From Caecitellus pseudoparvulus (Eukaryota > Protista > Bigyra: Bicosoecida), in NCBI GenBank assembly GCA_965644315.1, contig CBFFRQ010000057.1:667018-731017 (forward strand): a stretch of 64,000 bases of DNA. The letters run 5' to 3'. How positions within the stretch are numbered: position 1 is the stretch's first letter; each line of letters starts with the position of its first letter. Positions 10,411-53,473 of the stretch are shown here, piece by piece. The notes beneath the pieces are model-generated. The model did not search any database and had not been told where the DNA came from. It saw only the letters and a program-made list of their open reading frames with translations. Position numbers and translations under genes: made by a program.

Positions 10411-13400
10411 TCACTGTTGTGCTGCTGCGGCGGCGCCCTGCGCTGCGTAGGTGCTCTTAATCTGCTGCAGGCGCTTGGGGTCTCCTAGGCCCCACATCTC
10501 CAGCACCACCAGCACCTTGTCGCGCGGCGTGCGGTAGAGGCTGGCAAAGGCAGGGCGGGACAAGCACACCAGTGCCATGCGCCCGACAGCCTCTGTGAAG
10601 GCAGCAAACGTCAATGCAGTGGTTTTGTCCTTGGTGCTGGCCTTGGCACCGGGCTGCATGAGGCCGTGCGTGACTGCGGTGGCTGCGAAGATGCTCTTCA
10701 CTTCACTTTTGGAGGTGAAGGTAGGCACCACCATGTAATCCTTGCACAGGCGCAGGAAGGCCGACGCCGTCATGCCCGCACTGGGGCCACTGCCACAGTC
10801 AGCGTAGAACTTGAACAACTTGATGAGGGGCTTGGTGAAGTTGTCGAACAGCGCCATAACCTCTGGCTGGAACAGCTCGGCAGGGGCGTCCCCAGCGTCA
10901 GCAGCGCCGCCAGGCGCAGGTGCTGCCGGGGCAGGCGAGGGCCCCGACGCCGCTGCTGGCGCGCGTGTGGGCGGAGAGGACAGAGTGGGCACGCCGCCAG
11001 GCGTGACGGCGGTGGATGCCGGGGCACTGCCAGCAGCGCCTGCCGGGCCGCCGCCACGACGAGGAGGAGGAGACGCCGACGCAGCTGAGGCCAGCGCGTG
11101 TGCGTCCTGCTTCACCTTCTCGCCCAACTGGGTCATGGTGGCAAGCTGGGATGAGACCAACTCCCGGTCACGGTCGATGGACGCTCGCATGGCCTGCAGC
11201 TCCTCCATCTGCCGTGCGAAGTCTGCCTTGGCTGCCTCCAGCTCAGCCCGCTCCGCTGCCAGCGCGGCGCTGCCCTCGGACGTGTGAGACGCCGAAGTAG
11301 CAGTCAGGTGGGAGGGGGGGGGAGGGGGCGCGCCGGCCTCCTGGCTGGTGGGCGGTGGAGGGGGCACAGGTGTGGTGGAGGTGGCCGGGGCCGCTTGCGT
11401 CGTTGCCGTGCTGGCCCACGTGCTGGCAGCGTCGAAGCTGTGGCTGGCTGTGAACCCCTGGGATGCGGACTGCACAGTGCTGCTGGGTGTGTGTGCTGCC
11501 GAGAAGGAGCCGACGCTGCTGGGTGCAGGGCCCCCTGTCAGGCCTGTCCCCGCGAGAGCAGCGGTCAGTGCCTGCGCCCTGGCGAGGGTGGCCTGCATCT
11601 CCGGCGACAGCGCGGACACGGCAGCGGACACGGGGGGCGACGCCACGGGCTCCGGAGCCTGTGCCGCTGCTGGGCCCATGGCGGCGTCCATGTCCTCCTT
11701 GGTGAACAGGACCTGGGGCAGGAAGGGCGAGCCTGCGATGGGGCGCGCGTAGAAGAAGCCCTCCGCGTGCATGTTCACCTCCACTTCGATTTGGGGTGCG
11801 ATGCCACGCTGCGCCTTCTGCACATCCTCTGGCCCCAGCTGCACCTCGTACGTGACAGTGTAGCAGCCGTTGCCGTGGTCCACGATGTCGTACGGGACGG
11901 CCGGGCCATGCACCAGAATCTCAAACTGGTCGCCGCCTTCGTTGCGAGGGCTGTCGAATTGATCCCGCGCAACCACTGTGAAGGTGTTCTTCTGCCCCAG
12001 CCGGGCGAACTTAGCACCCTCACCCGTCACGACGCAGTGCTTGGGCGCCGTCGGGGCAGGCCGCACTTCCGGCAGGAAGGGCGAGCCGAAGATGTGCTGC
12101 CCCTTGTACTTCACACACAGCTCGAAGGTGCCAGCTTTGGGAGGCACGTAGTTGACCTGCAGCGTGCCGTCTCCGACATCCTCCGGGTGCAGCTCGATCT
12201 CCAGGTCCGCGTTGGACAGGGACACAGTAAAGGGCTCCTCGTCGTCCCCGTCGGCAGGCAGCGGGTTCCCGTACTCGTCGAAGTTCTGCTGCGGCTGCGG
12301 CATGGCCTCCTCGTCAGGCTGGATCGTGAAGGTAGCCTGCTCGCCCAGCACAGCCTCTGACAATCCTGGCCCCCAGGCACGGTGCCGCATAGCGAGGTCC
12401 TTGTGCGCAGCTGCCTTGTCGGCCTCCTCTTTCTTGTGGGCCTCCAATGCAGCCATACTACTCAATGGGTCCATGTGGGGATTGAAACCCGCGTGGCCTT
12501 GCTCTGGGGAGGGGGCGCGGGCACCGTGAGTGTGGCAAGCCGGCGCGAAACGCCCGTGCACATGAAACGCAACTTACGCTGTTGCCGTGCGCGCTGCCGC
12601 GCAGCGCGCTTCTCTGGATCGTGCACATCCTTGTGGGCCTGGATCAAGTACTGGATGGTTTCCACCCACCTGTCAGCCTCATCCTCATTCTCACACGCCA
12701 GGACCATCTCCTCCTCACCAGACGGCCTCACGGTGAAGGTGTGCACGATGTCTTTGTTCGTGTGCTGGCCCTTGGAGTCGCCCGCCTCCACCTCGGTCAG
12801 CTCATCGATCTCGATCTCGGCTCTAGGGCGGTAGTCTTCCTCCTTGTCAAAGTACTGCAGTTGGCTTCCCACAACCCGCAGCAGCTTGTCAGCCCACCTC
12901 TTCCTCGTGAACCGGGAGCGAGACTTCTTCTTCACCCACCCTTCCCGGATTGCCAGCTTCGTTTCATCCACTTCTGGTTGCATGCTGTCCTCATAGTCAT
13001 CATACATGCCGTCCCCACCCTGATACCCGTCACCGCCGCCCCACCCAGCCCCGGACGCGTCTGCCTCTACTCCGTACCCACCAGCGCCTCCTTGCTGCTG
13101 CGGCGCCACGCGCGCCATCAGCAGCCTGCTGCGCGTGGACTCGATCGTGTCCTCCGTCTCCGCCAGCTTGTCTTGCAGCATGCGCATGTTCCAGGCACGC
13201 TGCCTGTCCACACGGTACGGCATACCGTACCGCTTGGGCGACGAGCCGTAGGCTCCGGTGCCAGCTCCCGCCAAAGGGCCGCGCCGCGGACCCGGGCTGC
13301 CGAAACGCCCTGACCCCGCGCCACCACTCTGCCCGAAGCGGCTGGGGCTGTCCCCGAATGCCCCTGCAGCATCATGATACCCATCATGATCTGCATACTG

Positions 13401-45168: not shown

Positions 45169-47334
45169 TCAGGTCATGAGCGCTTCACTGGGCTGCAGGT
45201 TCTTGCTCTGCGCTTCCAGCCTCATCTTCTCGCCAAGCCGTCGCTGGCGAACTTTATCTGAGGCAATGCGCAGGGCATCCTCCTTCAGGCGATCGCGACC
45301 TCTGTACTCACCAGGCTCTTCTTTGGTCTGCAGCATGAACTCATCCACTTCTGCGCCAGCCATGTCCATCGCAGATGCGATGAACTTGGTCAAACCGCTT
45401 GCCTTGAGCCCCTTCTTGTGCTTGGCCTTGGCAGCCTGTGCGCCGCTTCCAGACACCCGCACGTCGCCGACCTCCGCATAGGCCTGCGCAAGGGCCCCTT
45501 GGATCTCAATCAAGGTGCCCTTGCGACGAGTGAGTGAAGCATCTTTCGAGAAGGGATCCATGCGGCCACGCCTGGTGGAGTCCCTCGTGAGTGGGCGCCC
45601 TGGGATGCCCCCAGTGAGGCCAGTGTCTGTGGAGGCGACAGATTCACCACCAAAGCTCCCCCTGCGGCCGTGACCGGCAGGTGTGGGTATCCCGAGCGTC
45701 TCCTGAGGTGTGTCAACTTCTGGCGTTGACGAGGCTTGCCTGGTTGACTCCATGGACTTCATGAACTTGCTGTGAGTGTTCGCGAACTGGTGTGCAGTGT
45801 TGTGAATCACGGCAGAGTGGACTGTCTCATGCCCGCTTCGAATTGAGGCACCCGCTGCCGTGGGCTGCACACGCACAATGCGCCGGTTTGCGACGACCAT
45901 GTCCCCCATGCGGGCTTCCATCTCTCGGCTGTCGATGTCAAGCGTCTCCGCTCCACCCTCACCCTCGCCATGCACGGCAGCTCGCACCACGCGCAAGAGG
46001 TATTGCAGCGTGTTCTTCACCTCCAACACCTTCTGCACTGCGCCTGCCGCCCACATGGAAGTGCCAGGGGGCAGGTCCTTCAGGGAGGCGCTGCCCAGTG
46101 CTGGGGTCGGGGCCAGGCTGCACTGGGCGTGCATGCTGTCTAGCGCTTGGTCAAACTGCACTTTGACACCTCTGAGGTCTTCGAACTCCTTTTGGGTGGC
46201 TTCTAGCTTTCGCTTGGCTGCATCTCTTTCAGATTCGATGGTGACCAGCGTGTGTGGGTCAAAGCCATCTTCGTCCCAATGGTTCCGGGCTTCGGGCTGC
46301 ATCTTGTTGCGCAGCTCAACTTCTGCTTTAGCAAGGTACGCAAGCCGCTCATTCAATGCTTGAAGTCGATCAGACACCCTGGACAACTCTGCTTGCTGCT
46401 GCACAAAAGCTTCCACGATATCATCTGGGCGAGGCGGCGGCAGCTCGGTGGCATCGCAACCCTCAGGCAGCTCAGATTGAGGCACCCCAGCAGCGATGCG
46501 CACTCTGCTGAATAAGTCGTACAAGTCATCCACGGTCTGCGCGAGCACCTGCTTGCGGTAGCTCAGCATGGCCTCTTCTTGCTGCAGTTCCATGGTGCGA
46601 GCTCGCAGTGCAGCTTCCTCCGCCGCCGTAAGGTCGCCTGCAGCTCGGGCGTTCAGGGTGGCCTCCTTCTTTGCGGCTGCTGCTTTCTCCAGCATCAGCC
46701 TCCGCCTTGCTTGGACTTCTTGGCGTCGAGTCTCGAGCTTTTCGGACAGCAGTTTGTGGTGCTGGGCCACCTCTGCCTGCGCCTCGGCCAGGTCCCTCTT
46801 CTCCTGAGTGTATGCCTTCATAACACTCGCCAAGAGGCGTTCCTGCAGTGATTGCTCTTGTTTTTGAACCCGCAAGGCATCTTCCAGCACCTGCAGAGTG
46901 CTGATGTGGTGCTGCTTTCCATCTCGCAGACGCTTGTACATGTGCTCCAGGGTGAAGTAGTACATGCAGGTCGCCTCATACTGTGATTTTTTCTGGGCAA
47001 CCTGGTCTTGTGCGTCAGTCACCTTTATTGACGCTTCACGTCGCATCTCATCAACGTTGTCTTCGAACTGCAGGCGGTCCAGCTCGGCGGTGGCCTTCTC
47101 GAACTCCCTTTGCTTCGCAACAAGTTGCTCTTGGATCTGTGACGTCTCACGCCGCAAGCGTAACACCTGAGCTTGTCTCTCTTGCCTTAGTTTGCTTGCA
47201 GCCTCGGTCGGGTCATAGTCTGCGAGGCCTGATGGTCCAGTCGCGTGGGTGCCTTCCTCGGTGGGCTTCCTCGTGCTAGCCTGTGGTTGGCCACACGTAG
47301 CACAAAGTTCAAGTGGAGCGTCCAAGGTAGGCAT
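45169..47334 (-). CDS. Long coiled-coil protein (flagellar docking-complex-like appearance); possible extra 5' exons up to ~47850
   Basis: 721-aa ORF dominated by heptads. The upstream region has splice-like signals that could not be resolved. Confidence 0.6.
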   Translation of the reverse strand: MPTLDAPLELCATCGQPQASTRKPTEEGTHATGPSGLADYDPTEAASKLRQERQAQVLRLRRETSQIQEQLVAKQREFEKATAELDRLQFEDNVDEMRREASIKVTDAQDQVAQKKSQYEATCMYYFTLEHMYKRLRDGKQHHISTLQVLEDALRVQKQEQSLQERLLASVMKAYTQEKRDLAEAQAEVAQHHKLLSEKLETRRQEVQARRRLMLEKAAAAKKEATLNARAAGDLTAAEEAALRARTMELQQEEAMLSYRKQVLAQTVDDLYDLFSRVRIAAGVPQSELPEGCDATELPPPRPDDIVEAFVQQQAELSRVSDRLQALNERLAYLAKAEVELRNKMQPEARNHWDEDGFDPHTLVTIESERDAAKRKLEATQKEFEDLRGVKVQFDQALDSMHAQCSLAPTPALGSASLKDLPPGTSMWAAGAVQKVLEVKNTLQYLLRVVRAAVHGEGEGGAETLDIDSREMEARMGDMVVANRRIVRVQPTAAGASIRSGHETVHSAVIHNTAHQFANTHSKFMKSMESTRQASSTPEVDTPQETLGIPTPAGHGRRGSFGGESVASTDTGLTGGIPGRPLTRDSTRRGRMDPFSKDASLTRRKGTLIEIQGALAQAYAEVGDVRVSGSGAQAAKAKHKKGLKASGLTKFIASAMDMAGAEVDEFMLQTKEEPGEYRGRDRLKEDALRIASDKVRQRRLGEKMRLEAQSKNLQPSEALMT

Positions 47335-48317: not shown

Positions 48318-51300
48318 ATGCCAAGAGTCAACAAAAAGGCGCAAAGAAGGGACAGGTACCAGCAGCTGGCGAAGGAGCAGGTGCGTGGGTTGCGGAAGTT
48401 GTTCATGTTCCACCCTGCCGCCACCCAACCCTTTCCCCGTACTCGTGCCTGCTCAGGGATACAGAGCTCGGTCAGCATTCAAACTCATCCAACTCAACAA
48501 GAAGTATGACTTCCTTTCCAGTGCTCAATGCGTCATCGACCTGTGCGCTGCCCCAGGCGGATGGCTGCAGGTGGCGCAGAAGTTTTGCCCCATGTCGGCA
48601 CGCATCATCGGAGTGGACCTGAACCCCATCAGGCCTATCCACAACGTGCTAACCCACCAAGCTGACATCACCACTGTTCAGTGCCGTCAGCTCCTGCGTC
48701 GTGACATGGGCAGCGCGAAAGCTGACGTTGTCCTTCACGATGGTGCTCCGAACGTCGGCGCTGACTGGCGATCTGACGCATACCAGCAGTCCATCTTGAC
48801 ACTGCACTCTGTGAAGCTGGCGACAGAATTCCTTCGTCCTGGCGGCCTCTTCATCACGAAGGTGTTTCGTTCAGCAGACTACACATCGCTGCTGTGGGTC
48901 TTCAACCAGCTCTTCTCCAAGGTGGAGGCGACCAAGCCTCACTCCTCACGAAATGCCTCTGCTGAGATCTTCGTTGTATGCCAAGGCTACTATGCCCCAT
49001 CCAAGATCGACGCCCGCATGCTGGACCCAAACCACGTTTTCAAGGATGATGTCGATGTGCACGCTGCAGCCGCTGGCAGCTCTGGTGGAGACAAGCCCTT
49101 GTCGGTCATGCACCCCAAAGGCCTCATGCAGCGCCGCAGCCGTAATGGCTATAAGCCTGAACGGGGCCTTCTCCAGCTGAATGAGGTTCCTGTGCGGGAC
49201 TTTTTCCTCGCCACGGACCCGGTTGAGGTGATTTCCGATGCCACTGCTTTGGTGTTCACAGGCGAGTCTGAACAGTACCTTTCGCATCCTTCCACAACCA
49301 GTGAAATTAAGGCCCTGTGTGAGGACCTGAAAGTCATCGGCAGGGCAGACTTTAAGCTGCTCCTCAAGTGGCGCATGCGCATCAACAAGGAGGAAGTGGC
49401 GGCGAAGCGAGCAGCCGCAGCAGCAGCTGGTGGTGCCGACCAGGCTGGGCACGGCAAAGACTCAGCCACTGGCGGAGGAAGCGAGTCTGACAGTGATGAA
49501 GACGAGGAGCTTGCTCAAGCCCTGACGTCAGAGGCCAAGCGCAAGCGGGCGGAGCGCAAGCGCGAGGCCAAGCGCCGACAGCGGGCCATCAAGAAGCACA
49601 TGTATGGCATGACAGGCCAGAGCGTGGACATTGATGCCATGAATGCGGAAGTGCCACGGTTCAGTCTGGCAGCCATCACCGGCAAGCTTTCGAACCCGGC
49701 AGTTCTAGATGAGATAGCAGATGTGGACTTGGACACCATGGATGCCACAGACCAAGCTGGAATCGATGCGATTTATGAAGGCGAGGCCCCTTTGAACCCC
49801 TTGGCAGAGAAGCCTGATGGTGACGCCAGCGATGCTAGCGAAGGAGTGGGCGAGGAAGAGTACTTGGCGGCCCTGGAGGGCGCTCTAGACCGCCACTACG
49901 AGGAGTTCAAAGAGAAGCGTCGTTCTCGAGACGCAGCCGCTGCGAAGGCCGCCATCGAAGGTCGTGTGTCCAAAGGTGTGAAGCTGACACGCCGCGGCCG
50001 CATGGAGGCAGAAGCAGCAGCGAAGGTGGCACAGGCTGAGGCAAAACTTGATTACAAGCACCAAGAGTATTTGAAGCTGCTCGCCGGCATGCGGGCGAAG
50101 GACAGCAGGCCTGTTGGAGGGAGTGACGACGAGTCATCCGGCGACGAAGGCGGCGCCAGCGACAACTCGGACGGGTTCTGGGATGCACACAAACAAGACC
50201 GCACCGTGGACAGCGACGAAGAAGGGGACGCTATCATTCCGTCAGGCAGTTCTGCTTCCGCTGCGGCTGCCCGCTGGTTCAGCAACCCTGCAGTCTCAGG
50301 CGTGCTCCCAGTTGGGACTGTGGAGTTCAACACTGAATCCCGTGGGACAAAGCGTGCGCGTGGAGGCGACTCGGATGATGATGGGTTTGAGGACGGCAGT
50401 GATGACGACGGCCTCCCTGATTTCATGCGGGATCTGCCCAAGTCTGAGCGAGAGCTTCGCAAGGAGCGCCTGAAGCGGGCGAGGGAAAAGGAAGAGTACC
50501 TCGCAAAGAAGCGCACCGCGCATGATGACAGCAAGCTGCAAATTGTGAAGGGGCCTGCAGCTTCATACGAGTCTGAAGGCGATGAATCGGCAGACGATGA
50601 AGGCAAGGTGTCCCAAGCCACGAAGGATTTGATTAAGGCTGGCATGGGCGCTGCTCTGACCGGCAAATCTGTTTCGAGCACAACAGGAAAGGCTGCCGGC
50701 CCAAGTGAGGGTGGCTTTGAGACTGTGCCTCGCTTGGGGGATGCAGCAGATGATGATGATCCACGGGACCAAGAGTACGACTCTGACACCCACGCAGAAA
50801 TCCTCGCTTTGGGAAAGCTCATGCGCCAGCACACCACTGCGAAGGCGCTTGTGGATGCCAGCTACAACCGGTACTCATTTGATGATGGGGCCTTGCCCTC
50901 ATGGTTTGCTGCTGACGAAGCCAAGCACTTCCGGCCACAGCTTCCCGTGTCAAAGGCAGATGTGGAGCAGATTAAGACACGCTTCCGCGACATTGCCGCC
51001 CGGCCCATTCACAAGGTCATGGAGGCGAGGGCGAGGAAGAAGCACCGTTCCACAGCAAAGCTGGCGAAGGCACGTCGTGCTGCAGAGGCGATTGCAGCGG
51101 ATGAAACCATGGGTCACACCGAGAAGATGAAAGCCATGGCACGCACTTATCGAGGCACCCAAAAAGAAAAACGGGAGAAGGTTTATGTGGTGGCAAGCAA
51201 AGGAGGGAACTCGTCCCTTGCCGTGCGAGGTGCCCGCAAACGCGGTGCAGCGGTGAAGCAAGTTGACTCACGACTCAGGGCAGACACTCGCGGGGAGAAG

Positions 51301-51351
51301 AACGCAAGGTTCCGCTCGAAGAAGCGGGCAGCGAAACGCCGTCGCAAGTAA
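48318..51351 (+). CDS. SPB1: Pre-rRNA 2'-O-methyltransferase Spb1/FTSJ3; intron 48381-48456
   Basis: RDRYQQLAKEQ|GYRARSAFKLIQLN, DLCAAPGGWLQVA, VLHDGAPNVG, SRNASAEIFVVC and the C-terminal RPI.KVMEARARKK..KQVDSRLRAD motifs. Confidence 0.96.
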
Positions 51352-51414
51352 AACATAGCTGGATATTGTTCTGGTGAGTGGCTGGTGTGGCTGGTGTCGT
51401 GTGCCGCGCCGTGT

Positions 51415-51588
51415 GCGACTGCTTGCCACAGTGCTGGGCTGCCCCCCGGGGCTGTAGCCTGAGAAACTGCCAAAGCGGTCGAAGATCAAACGTGTATTGC
51501 ACGGACTAATATAGGAAACTGTCCACGCTCTAAGCAGCGAAAGCTGTGTGCACCCGTGTGTGGCCGGGGTCGAACGTCCGTAACATAT
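51415..51588 (+). ncRNA. Box H/ACA snoRNA, snR34/U65 (SNORA65)-like, copy 1
   Basis: Hairpin 1 (CGACTGCTT/AAGCGGTCG), box H AGATCA 51483-51488, hairpin 2 (ACGGAC/GTCCGT), ACA 51583-51585 + 3 nt. Pockets are antisense to the conserved LSU sequences UGGC-UU-GUGGCAG and UUCGAUGUCGGC-UC-UUCCUAU. Confidence 0.82.
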
Positions 51589-51724
51589 CACACGTCACGT
51601 GTCATGTCGTGCGCAGGAGTCGGACAGCGAGAGGGGGAGAGAGCATGTGCAGGCCGGGGAGCGATGCAGTGGAGTGGGCGTCTGCTGTGACGGTGAGTGG
51701 ATGGTGTCGTGTGCCGCGCCGTGT

Positions 51725-51898
51725 GCGACTGCTTGCCACAGTGCTGGGCTGCCCCCCGGGGCTGTAGCCTGAGAAACTGCCAAAGCGGTCGAAGATCAAA
51801 CGTGTATTGCACGGACTAATATAGGAAACTGTCCACGCTCTAAGCAGCGAAAGCTGTGTGCACCCGTGTGTGGCCGGGGTCGAACGTCCGTAACATAT
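51725..51898 (+). ncRNA. Box H/ACA snoRNA, snR34/U65-like, copy 2
   Basis: Same core as copy 1, offset by 310 bp. Confidence 0.82.
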
Positions 51899-52034
51899 CA
51901 CACGTCACGTGTCGTGTCGTGCGCAGGAGTCGGACAGCGAGGGGGGGAGAGAGCATGTGCAGGCCGGGGAGCGAAGCAGTGGAGTGGGCGTCTGCTGTGA
52001 CGGTGAGTGGCTGGTGTCGTGTGCCGCGCCGTGC

Positions 52035-52208
52035 GCGACTGCTTGCCACAGTGCTGGGCTGCCCCCCGGGGCTGTAGCCTGAGAAACTGCCAAAGCGGTC
52101 GAAGATCAAACGTGTATTGCACGGACTAATATAGGAAACTGTCCACGCTCTAAGCAGCGAAAGCTGTGTGCACCCGTGTGTGGCCGGGGTCGAACGTCCG
52201 TAACATAT
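52035..52208 (+). ncRNA. Box H/ACA snoRNA, snR34/U65-like, copy 3
   Basis: Same core as copy 1, offset by 620 bp. Confidence 0.82.
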
Positions 52209-52387
52209 CACACGTCACGTGTCGTGTCGTGCGCAGGAGTCGGACAGCGAGGGGGGGGAGAGCATGTGCAGGCCGGGGAGCGATGCAGTGGAGTGGACTT
52301 CCTGCGCAACCAATGTTTGGGGGTCTTTGGCAATGCACTACCGGGTGCTTTTTTTCTGTGCTGCAAGTCTTCTTGCTGGTAGGCCAA

Positions 52388-52472: not shown

Positions 52473-53473
52473 ATGTTGCGCTCAGCAGCCCGCATGGCGG
52501 CTCCGGCCGCAGTCATGGCCAGCCTGGCTTGGACCAGCAGCGCCAGCGCAGCTGACGACGAAGACCTGTTCATCGTCAAGACAGCTCTGAACCCCAAGCA
52601 GTGGAAGGACTTTGAGTGCATTGAAAAGAAACAGCTGACTCACAACACTGCGCGACTTCGCTTTGCACTGCCTCCTCACCACGAGCTGGGCATGACCACC
52701 GCCTCGTGCCTGGTGGCTCGTGCGGACATTGATGGTGTGTCAGCCTCCGCCAGCCCCCAAGCACTGTGCGCGAGTCCATGGATCTCGCTTTTCCTTACGC
52801 AGGGAAAACTGTCGTGAGACCCTACACCCCCACTTCGCGCGAGCACGACAAGGGCTTCTTTGACCTGGTCGTGAAGACGTATCCCGAGGGCAAACTGAGC
52901 AAGTAGGTGTAGCTGGCGGCATGAGTACCTTCCAGACGCAAGCCGCTTTTCGCCTGCTGCCACCTCAGGCACATTTACGGGCTGGACCAGGGCGATTTCC
53001 TGGAATTCAAGGGACCCTTTAAGAAGCTGGACATCTCTTCAAACTCGAAGAAGGCCATCGGCATGATCGCCGGCGGCACGGGGATCACGCCCATGCTACA
53101 AGTGATCCAGAAGCTGCTGGACGACCCCCGGGACAAGACCGAGCTGCGTTTGCTGTACGCGAATAACACCGAAGATGACATTATTCTGAAGAATCAGCTG
53201 GACGCCCTTGCCTTGGTGCACCCTCGCTTCAAGGTGTACTACACGGTGACCGAGCCCAGCGAGGGCTGGACCGGCTTCACCGGCTTCGTGGACGCTGACA
53301 AAGTGGCAGCGACGCTCCCCCCCCCCAGCGATGACCACTTGGTGCTGGTGTGTGGCCCCCCTCCAATGGTCAAGGCAATGAGTGGAGGGAAGGCCAAGGA
53401 CAAGTCGCAAGGCCCGCTGGAGGGGCTGCTGAAGGAGATGAAGTACACGTCTGAGCAAGTGTTCAAGTTCTGA
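52473..53473 (+). CDS. NADH-cytochrome b5 reductase (Mcr1-like, mitochondrial-type N-terminus); introns 52735-52802 and 52903-52968
   Basis: [32 protein letters not shown]|[21 protein letters not shown] and EQVFKF motifs. Confidence 0.93.

Follow-up and report, generated by a model that had tools for sequence, protein, structure and literature searches.

The window analysed here, a 64-kb stretch of Caecitellus pseudoparvulus DNA, carries on its forward strand a gene for an SPB1/FtsJ3-type rRNA 2'-O-methyltransferase, and the 3' untranslated region (UTR) of this gene runs into a tandem repeat. The features of this part of the window are listed below, with positions counted from the first nucleotide of the window, and with hairpins, arms and boxes given for copy 1 of the predicted small nucleolar RNA (snoRNA).

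48385..51351, + strand: SPB1/FtsJ3-type rRNA 2'-O-methyltransferase open reading frame (ORF), the host gene, start provisional, with stop codon TAA at 51349-51351 (Pfam FtsJ, DUF3381 and Spb1_C, E 1e-32 to 1e-51; homologs named SPB1)
51352..51373, + strand: start of the SPB1 3' UTR, 22 nt, ending at the first 5' splice site (an X1 contig crosses 51373/74 into the next exon)
51374..51616, + strand: intron 1, GTGAGT...CAG, 243 nt, with snoRNA copy 1 (spliced contig joining 51373 to 51617; alignment of the repeat units)
51415..51588, + strand: H/ACA snoRNA copy 1, 174 nt predicted (folds, Rfam snoR2/U65 alignment, targets and distances, 199 bits with covariance model R1, X12 contig 51415-51567)
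51416-51481, + strand: 5' hairpin
51423-29 and 51469-72, + strand: pocket 1 arms, UUGCCAC and GCCA
51483-88, + strand: box H, AGAUCA
51500-05 and 51576-81, + strand: lower stem of the 3' hairpin, ACGGAC / GUCCGU
51511-17 and 51569-73, + strand: pocket 2 arms, AUAGGAA and GUCGA
51583-85, + strand: box ACA
51617..51692, + strand: cassette 1 exon, 76 nt, non-coding (X1 contigs spliced on both sides, with loose ends at 51616 and 51693)
51693..51926, + strand: intron 2, GTGAGT...CAG, 234 nt, with snoRNA copy 2 (5' joint at 51692/93; 3' end placed by identity with unit 1)
51725..51898, + strand: H/ACA snoRNA copy 2, identical to copy 1 (DNA search, model R1)
51927..52002, + strand: probable cassette 2 exon, 76 nt, non-coding (identical to the first exon except for two substitutions)
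52003..52236, + strand: probable intron 3, GTGAGT...CAG, 234 nt, with snoRNA copy 3 (placed by identical splice-site sequences)
52035..52208, + strand: H/ACA snoRNA copy 3, identical to copy 1 (DNA search, model R1)
52237..52350, end (poly(A) site) approximate, + strand: probable terminal 3' UTR exon, which begins like the cassette exons and exits the repeat at about 52296

Tandem Repeats Finder reports a single array at 51387-52296 (period 310, 2.9 copies, 98% matches). Within it, the three snoRNA cores of 174 nt each (51415-51588, 51725-51898 and 52035-52208) are 100% identical, and a DNA search of the 30.6-Mb genome returned no further copy of the core, in agreement with the later covariance model. 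Alignment of the units places all differences between them outside the cores: unit 1 has a 9-nt duplication at its start that is absent from units 2 and 3, unit 3 has a single substitution 3 nt upstream of snoRNA copy 3, and a few changes also lie downstream of the cores. A first-pass annotation, made from the letters of the window, had described three identical copies in a 310-bp repeat with differences confined to the flanks, and the array and unit alignment bear out both statements. Its further view that the repeat "hides" a guide RNA holds insofar as there is an RNA inside, but the repeat is more than that, with each unit comprising an intron and an exon of the SPB1 3' UTR. GT-rich GGCTGGTGT repeats occur at 51380-51400, upstream of copy 1, where the 9-nt duplication of unit 1 is also found. 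A Pfam search of minus-strand and overlapping ORFs within the array gave no match.

Each unit has GTGAGT at its start and CAG 28 nt past the snoRNA. We aligned public assembled contigs to positions 50700-51700; as contigs, they report joined sequence without RNA ends, strand or abundance. A 798-nt contig from X1, a run labelled metatranscriptomic, proceeds from the end of the SPB1 coding sequence to 51373 and then directly to AGTCGGACAGCGAG, the sequence that follows the CAG at 51616. Further X1 contigs join 51692 to this exon start and connect exon ends to 51617. Because these spliced joints fall at the ends of both segments, 51374-51616 is a canonical GT-AG intron holding the snoRNA and 51617-51692 is an exon, and the pattern repeats. 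In a second run, X12 (an RNA library), the sole contig on 50700-51700 covers 51415-51567, and none covers the SPB1 exons. This pattern fits a stable RNA that exceeds the host mRNA in abundance, with DNA carry-over as an alternative source of the contig.

The 5' hairpin, formed by the first 76 nt of the + strand, has a lower stem of 9 bp and an upper stem separated by an internal loop. Its folding energy is -32.4 kcal/mol (z -2.67), which 0 of 200 shuffled sequences matched; the reverse strand gave no comparable fold of this region. The 3' hairpin adopts the expected succession of stem, internal loop and stem, though shuffles fold just as well (z -0.02). Across the whole 176 nt, both minimum free energy and centroid folds have the order hairpin, hinge, hairpin and tail. 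The hinge starts with AGAUCA, directly after the 5' hairpin, which matches the box H consensus ANANNA, while ACA opens the tail 1 nt past the lower stem of the 3' hairpin and is conserved in a relative described below, the 3' end of the RNA itself being a prediction. In both pockets and in both species, the pocket arm lies 14 nt from its box, where the rule for H/ACA RNAs is 14-16 nt from the top of the pocket (the target U) to box H or ACA (10.1101/569061). Where the guide helices of pocket 2 meet the upper stem, one nucleotide is unpaired on each side (A51518 and G51568). The computed folds agree with the hairpin-AGATCA-hairpin-ACA arrangement that the first-pass annotation read on the + strand, and a scan of the pockets confirms its 14-nt distance from the top of pocket 1 to box H. 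The motifs it named are all present, and the positions it gave are exact (TTGCCAC 51423-29, GCCA 51469-72, AGATCA 51483-88, ATAGGAA 51511-17, GCCGGGGTCGAA 51563-74 and ACA 51583-85).

In every structural feature tested, the RNA conforms to the H/ACA class. A trypanosomatid-style cluster of single-hairpin AGA-box RNAs was also considered, and was ruled out by the stramenopile SPB1 homologs, the spliced units and the ANANNA hinge box with its 14-nt spacing. Two observations concern the apical part of hairpin 2. Its loop is GNRA-capped, with GAAA here and GAGA in the relative, and a T>C difference at 51547, fixed in an X1 seawater contig, converts an apical-stem G.U pair (G51534-U51547) to G-C.

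Potential targets were sought in the organism's own rRNA. The rDNA consists of tandem 8.45-kb units, at least four of them on one contig (G000:C81:463382-494910; L001-L004, L022). With SSU, 5.8S and LSU boundaries set with Rfam, the SSU is 1,696 nt long and the LSU a compact 3,173 nt, and LSU positions are counted on L001 1501-4673. The 28S rRNA contains GGGAUAACUGGC-UU-GUGGCAGCC, with the core CUGGC-UU-GUGGCAG and its first U at 2670, as the target of pocket 1, and UUCGAUGUCGGC-UC-UUCCUAUCAU, with a core that ends in UC-UUCCUAU and its U at 2724, as the target of pocket 2. We scanned all SSU, 5.8S and LSU uridines with H/ACA pairing rules, and each of the two uridines was the single best canonical target for its pocket: U2670 for pocket 1 (5' arm ending at C51429 and 3' arm starting at G51469; 4+7 bp) and U2724 for pocket 2 (5' arm ending at A51517 and 3' arm starting at G51569; 5+7 bp). 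When the arms were shuffled, 0 of 3,000 trials equalled the observed pairing at either named site, and only 3% and 1.6% equalled it at any rRNA uridine. The two uridines are 54 nt apart, as are yeast Psi2826 and Psi2880, both of which are assigned to snR34 in a review table (PMC5699541), and snR34 is described as the homolog of human U65 (PMC5778458). The first-pass annotation had proposed that the two pockets frame the equivalents of exactly these yeast pseudouridines and had named snR34 as their guide; the review supports this assignment, and the proposal, which made complementarity to the organism's 28S its own check, is upheld by the presence of both sites there, at the yeast spacing and as the best site for each pocket.

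To place the locus among relatives, we compared SPB1 proteins and the sequence downstream of them. The nearest named homologs are those of Cafeteria and oomycetes, and marine metagenomes and Logan assemblies supplied closer proteins, at 99% and 61% identity. Sequencing runs that contain DNA of the window are seawater or marine samples, and the genome is accordingly that of a marine stramenopile. The SPB1 contigs of the 99% protein and of two 61% proteins all end 92-180 nt past the stop codon (L008:6886-7066, L009:3584-3676 and L010:6967-7059), and such breaks just after SPB1 in three independent short-read assemblies fit a tandem repeat at this place in all of them. L008 has GTGAGT 14 nt past the SPB1 stop, followed by the 5' half of the snoRNA, while L009, from the second 61% lineage, has GTACGT 24 nt past the stop and is too short to reach any snoRNA. 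Upstream of SPB1, the opposite strand carries an ORF of 711-721 aa, free of Pfam domains, both here (45169-47334, - strand) and in the 61% relative (L008:201-2336, - strand), and local gene order around the host is therefore conserved.

A metagenome search with the SPB1 C-terminus gave 600 pattern matches and no confirmed relative. A gapped DNA pattern found nine loci in metagenome contigs, one of which (L018) is an ortholog; the other eight are chance matches in unrelated, mostly coding DNA. L018 belongs to the same relative as L008, with an SPB1 61% identical to the one here, and includes one full unit and the start of a second. Its snoRNA (13082-13254) lies within a GTGAGT...CAG intron at the same place after the SPB1 stop, and this intron is followed by a short exon unrelated to the exon here and by a second intron with a second copy. 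(GT)n microsatellites of differing length occur just upstream of each copy (L018:13044-13072 and L018:13383-13399).

The RNA of the relative has the same architecture (z -3.22). Pocket 1 arms and the 5' lower stem are identical between the two, box H is AGAUCA here and AAAGCA there, both conforming to ANANNA, and ACA is conserved. Elsewhere, pairing is kept through changed sequence: the upper stem of hairpin 1 has compensatory changes (e.g., U-A to C-G), and the lower stem of hairpin 2 is ACGGAC/GUCCGU here and GCGACC/GGUCGC in the relative. RNAalifold counts 6 of 42 pairs changed on both sides, in an alignment of two sequences only. With one complete independent ortholog, the covariation of the snoRNA is real but thin. 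Pairing of the relative's RNA with rRNA amounts to 4+7 bp in pocket 1 and 5+5 bp in pocket 2, where U2710 scores an equal count (7+3). R1, a covariance model of these two sequences, recovers only the three copies in this genome, and neither R1 nor Rfam gave a match downstream of SPB1 in a 42% relative (L020) or in Cafeteria (L021). In E-value mode, Rfam searches of the relatives' loci returned noise only (CRISPR-DR29 and mir-598).

Searches with Rfam at gathering thresholds detected no family in the whole window. When the array was searched permissively, every copy had RF01292 (snoR2/U65) as its top family, aligned over the complete model (1-149), with CCAC, the G(C/U)CA arm, the hinge, AUAGGAA, the G(C/U)CGA arm and ACA on corresponding model positions, and with plant GCCGA aligned to GUCGA here. 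The score was 18.5 bits (E 1.2 in a 1.1-kb search), under the gathering value of 44. No family of the U65/snR34/snoR2 clan (CL00042) reaches its gathering score, and RF01292 gave no genome-wide match at E<=10. The Rfam check that accompanied the first-pass annotation thus returned the expected family on top and over its full length, but below threshold. Other sub-threshold matches in the array (MEG8_2, mir-1421 and Six3os1) were set aside as chance, with E values of 5.7-8.1 and models that are structureless or scores far under thresholds.

Together with this top family, the two 28S targets and the L018 ortholog, with its guides, boxes, 14-nt spacing and covarying stems, support the U65/snR34-type identity of the earlier reading. 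Very probably, the locus comprises three cassettes in the SPB1 3' UTR, each made of a GT-AG intron with a two-hairpin H/ACA snoRNA and a 76-nt exon, and the snoRNA is the ortholog in this lineage of yeast snR34, human U65 and plant snoR2. It would be a functional and positional ortholog by virtue of its targets and not of its Rfam score, with function deduced from the sequence. An RNA of a known kind is the expected finding here, in a lineage where it was previously unannotated.

How pocket 2 is paired bears on two other readings of the RNA. The first-pass annotation was right about the AUAGGAA arm and the uridine that it frames, but had drawn the 3' arm as 12 nt (51563-74), a segment that begins 20 nt away from ACA and lacks conservation. 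A genuine H/ACA snoRNA could have an extended, non-canonical pocket 2, in which GCCGGGGUCGAA at 51563-74 pairs with UUCGAUGUCGGC and melts the base of the upper stem. Such an arm would form 11 of 12 pairs here (with two G.U pairs and one G.G mismatch) and frame the same U2724, but its 20 nt to ACA fall outside the 14-16 nt rule (10.1101/569061), and the segment also builds the upper stem's conserved base (C-G and U.G/U-A). GUCGA (51569-73), the shorter arm, forms four Watson-Crick pairs and one U.G wobble with UCGGC, frames U2724 and lies 14 nt from ACA. It is common to both species at this distance and agrees with plant GCCGA and with yeast snR34, whose 3' pocket also makes 5 bp on its 3' side (10.1101/569061). 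The relative settles the question of register because it loses the CCGG pairing, having AGAGC in that part of the 12-nt arm, which is unable to pair with rRNA, yet keeps GUCGA and the 14-nt spacing. Most likely, therefore, pocket 2 works with GUCGA as its 3' arm and not with the 12-nt GCCGGGGTCGAA, and the extended pocket is improbable. A further register, GUCGAA with UUCGAU (a 7-8-nt rRNA loop, with the equivalent of E. coli U2506 as target), was dropped in favor of the canonical GUCGA:UCGGC pairing at 14 nt in both species.

Even in this register, the 3' pocket includes a wobble and has fewer pairs, which number just 5+5 in the relative, with U2710 equal there, and the 3' hairpin folds no more stably than shuffles do. 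These features would be compatible with an RNA in which only the 5' pocket is catalytic and the 3' hairpin serves RNP assembly or stability, or acts as an rRNA-binding chaperone. We regard this as highly improbable: lineages whose surroundings have diverged retain both guide arms and the 14-nt spacing, the 10-12 bp of the 3' pocket exceed the minimum of 8 bp in total, with at least 3 bp per side, around an unpaired U-N (10.1101/569061), and the dual-target design is the same as in snR34, U65 and snoR2. A satellite or degenerate repeat with fortuitous hairpins and complementarity, or a decaying array of snoRNA pseudogenes, could be suspected from the lack of an Rfam match at gathering thresholds and from the frequency of inverted repeats in tandem repeats, but is hardly credible and already largely refuted. 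Guides, boxes and spacings are conserved and stems compensated while the cassette exons are unrelated in the relative, the introns are spliced at canonical sites, the cores are identical between variable flanks, and no shuffled arm among 3,000 trials reached the named sites. The dual-guide snoRNA carried by spliced cassettes is accordingly the reading followed below.

Production of the RNA would begin with splicing, which would free the intron, and exonucleolytic trimming to the hairpins protected in the RNP would then leave an RNA of about 174 nt that ends 3 nt past ACA. Cbf5/dyskerin, Nop10, Gar1 and Nhp2 would be expected to bind it. In the assembled particle, the 5' pocket (UUGCCAC/GCCA) may pair with 28S CUGGC-UU-GUGGCAG and present U2670, which corresponds to yeast Psi2826 and E. 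coli 2457, and the 3' pocket (AUAGGAA/GUCGA) may pair with UCGGC-UC-UUCCUAU and present U2724, which corresponds to yeast Psi2880 and E. coli 2511. The two uridines lie in the peptidyl-transferase centre, where they are candidates for pseudouridylation, and the triplicated cassette could supply three snoRNA molecules per host transcript. The genome encodes a DKCLD (dyskerin-type) domain and Gar1 domains. The Gar1 domain is matched four times with near-equal scores of 59.8-60 bits (G000:C122:22345-22494, C54:434008-434157, C2:8966-9115 and C45:68731-68880), which suggests several near-identical gene copies or a duplicated segment.

Yeast snR34 is independently transcribed, single-copy and about 200 nt long, whereas the RNA described here is intronic, triplicated and 174 nt long. 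Both are two-hairpin H/ACA RNAs; the yeast 5' pocket targets GGC-UU-GUGGCAG and its 3' pocket UCGGC-UC-UUCCUAU, with 5 bp on the 3' side of the latter and targets 54 nt apart in the peptidyl-transferase centre, as here. Differences in pairing are a U.G wobble in the 3' arm here (GUCGA), and 7 bp on the 5' side here compared with 10 in yeast. Plant snoR2/U65 (RF01292) and vertebrate U65/SNORA65 (CL00042) share CCAC, AUAGGAA, G(C/U)CGA, box H and ACA at the same model positions, and plant snoR2 also shares the single unpaired nucleotide on each side of the pocket 2 upper stem; in contrast, hairpin 2 here has an apical part that exceeds theirs by 19 nt, and stem sequences are unrelated.

In terms of gene organization, the closest parallels are mammalian. 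SNORD116 and SNORD115 (downstream of SNURF-SNRPN), SNORD113/114 and hosts of the UHG/GAS5 type consist of repeated cassettes of a snoRNA-bearing intron and a short non-coding exon. In these arrays, conservation is confined to the snoRNA and does not extend to the exons, and the cassettes lie downstream of a protein-coding ORF, features they have in common with the locus here. By contrast, there are three units here, they encode H/ACA and not C/D RNAs, and they occupy the 3' UTR of a protist ribosome-biogenesis gene, and the imprinting or tissue specificity of the mammalian arrays finds no support at this locus.

The pseudouridines that snR34/U65 guides belong to the most conserved rRNA modifications in the catalytic centre of eukaryotes, and finding their guide in a little-studied lineage of marine stramenopiles extends this conservation. 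The locus is also a compact case of snoRNA cassettes (intron plus exon) in a ribosome-biogenesis 3' UTR that are kept while their exons drift. In practical terms, its value is for genome annotation and the design of Psi-mapping experiments, including a two-species covarying seed for annotating protist H/ACA snoRNAs missed by Rfam; no new mechanism is implied. Hosting of the snoRNA in the SPB1 3' UTR extends to at least two stramenopile lineages, whose SPB1 proteins are 61% identical. In yeast, Spb1 methylates G2922 in the same catalytic centre (PMC5699541). Because the yeast counterpart of the host thus modifies the same centre, and because exon junctions downstream of the stop codon could trigger nonsense-mediated decay (NMD), a regulatory coupling is conceivable, though unlikely, in which one unit would give both Spb1 (for the Gm2922 equivalent) and a snoRNA for two pseudouridines from an NMD-sensitive mRNA. 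If true, methyltransferase dosage would be tied to snoRNA output and splicing. Further along the window, downstream of the array, an ORF at 52473-52817 that has no Pfam match and an apparent GT-type splice site at its end may represent exon 1 of a larger gene.
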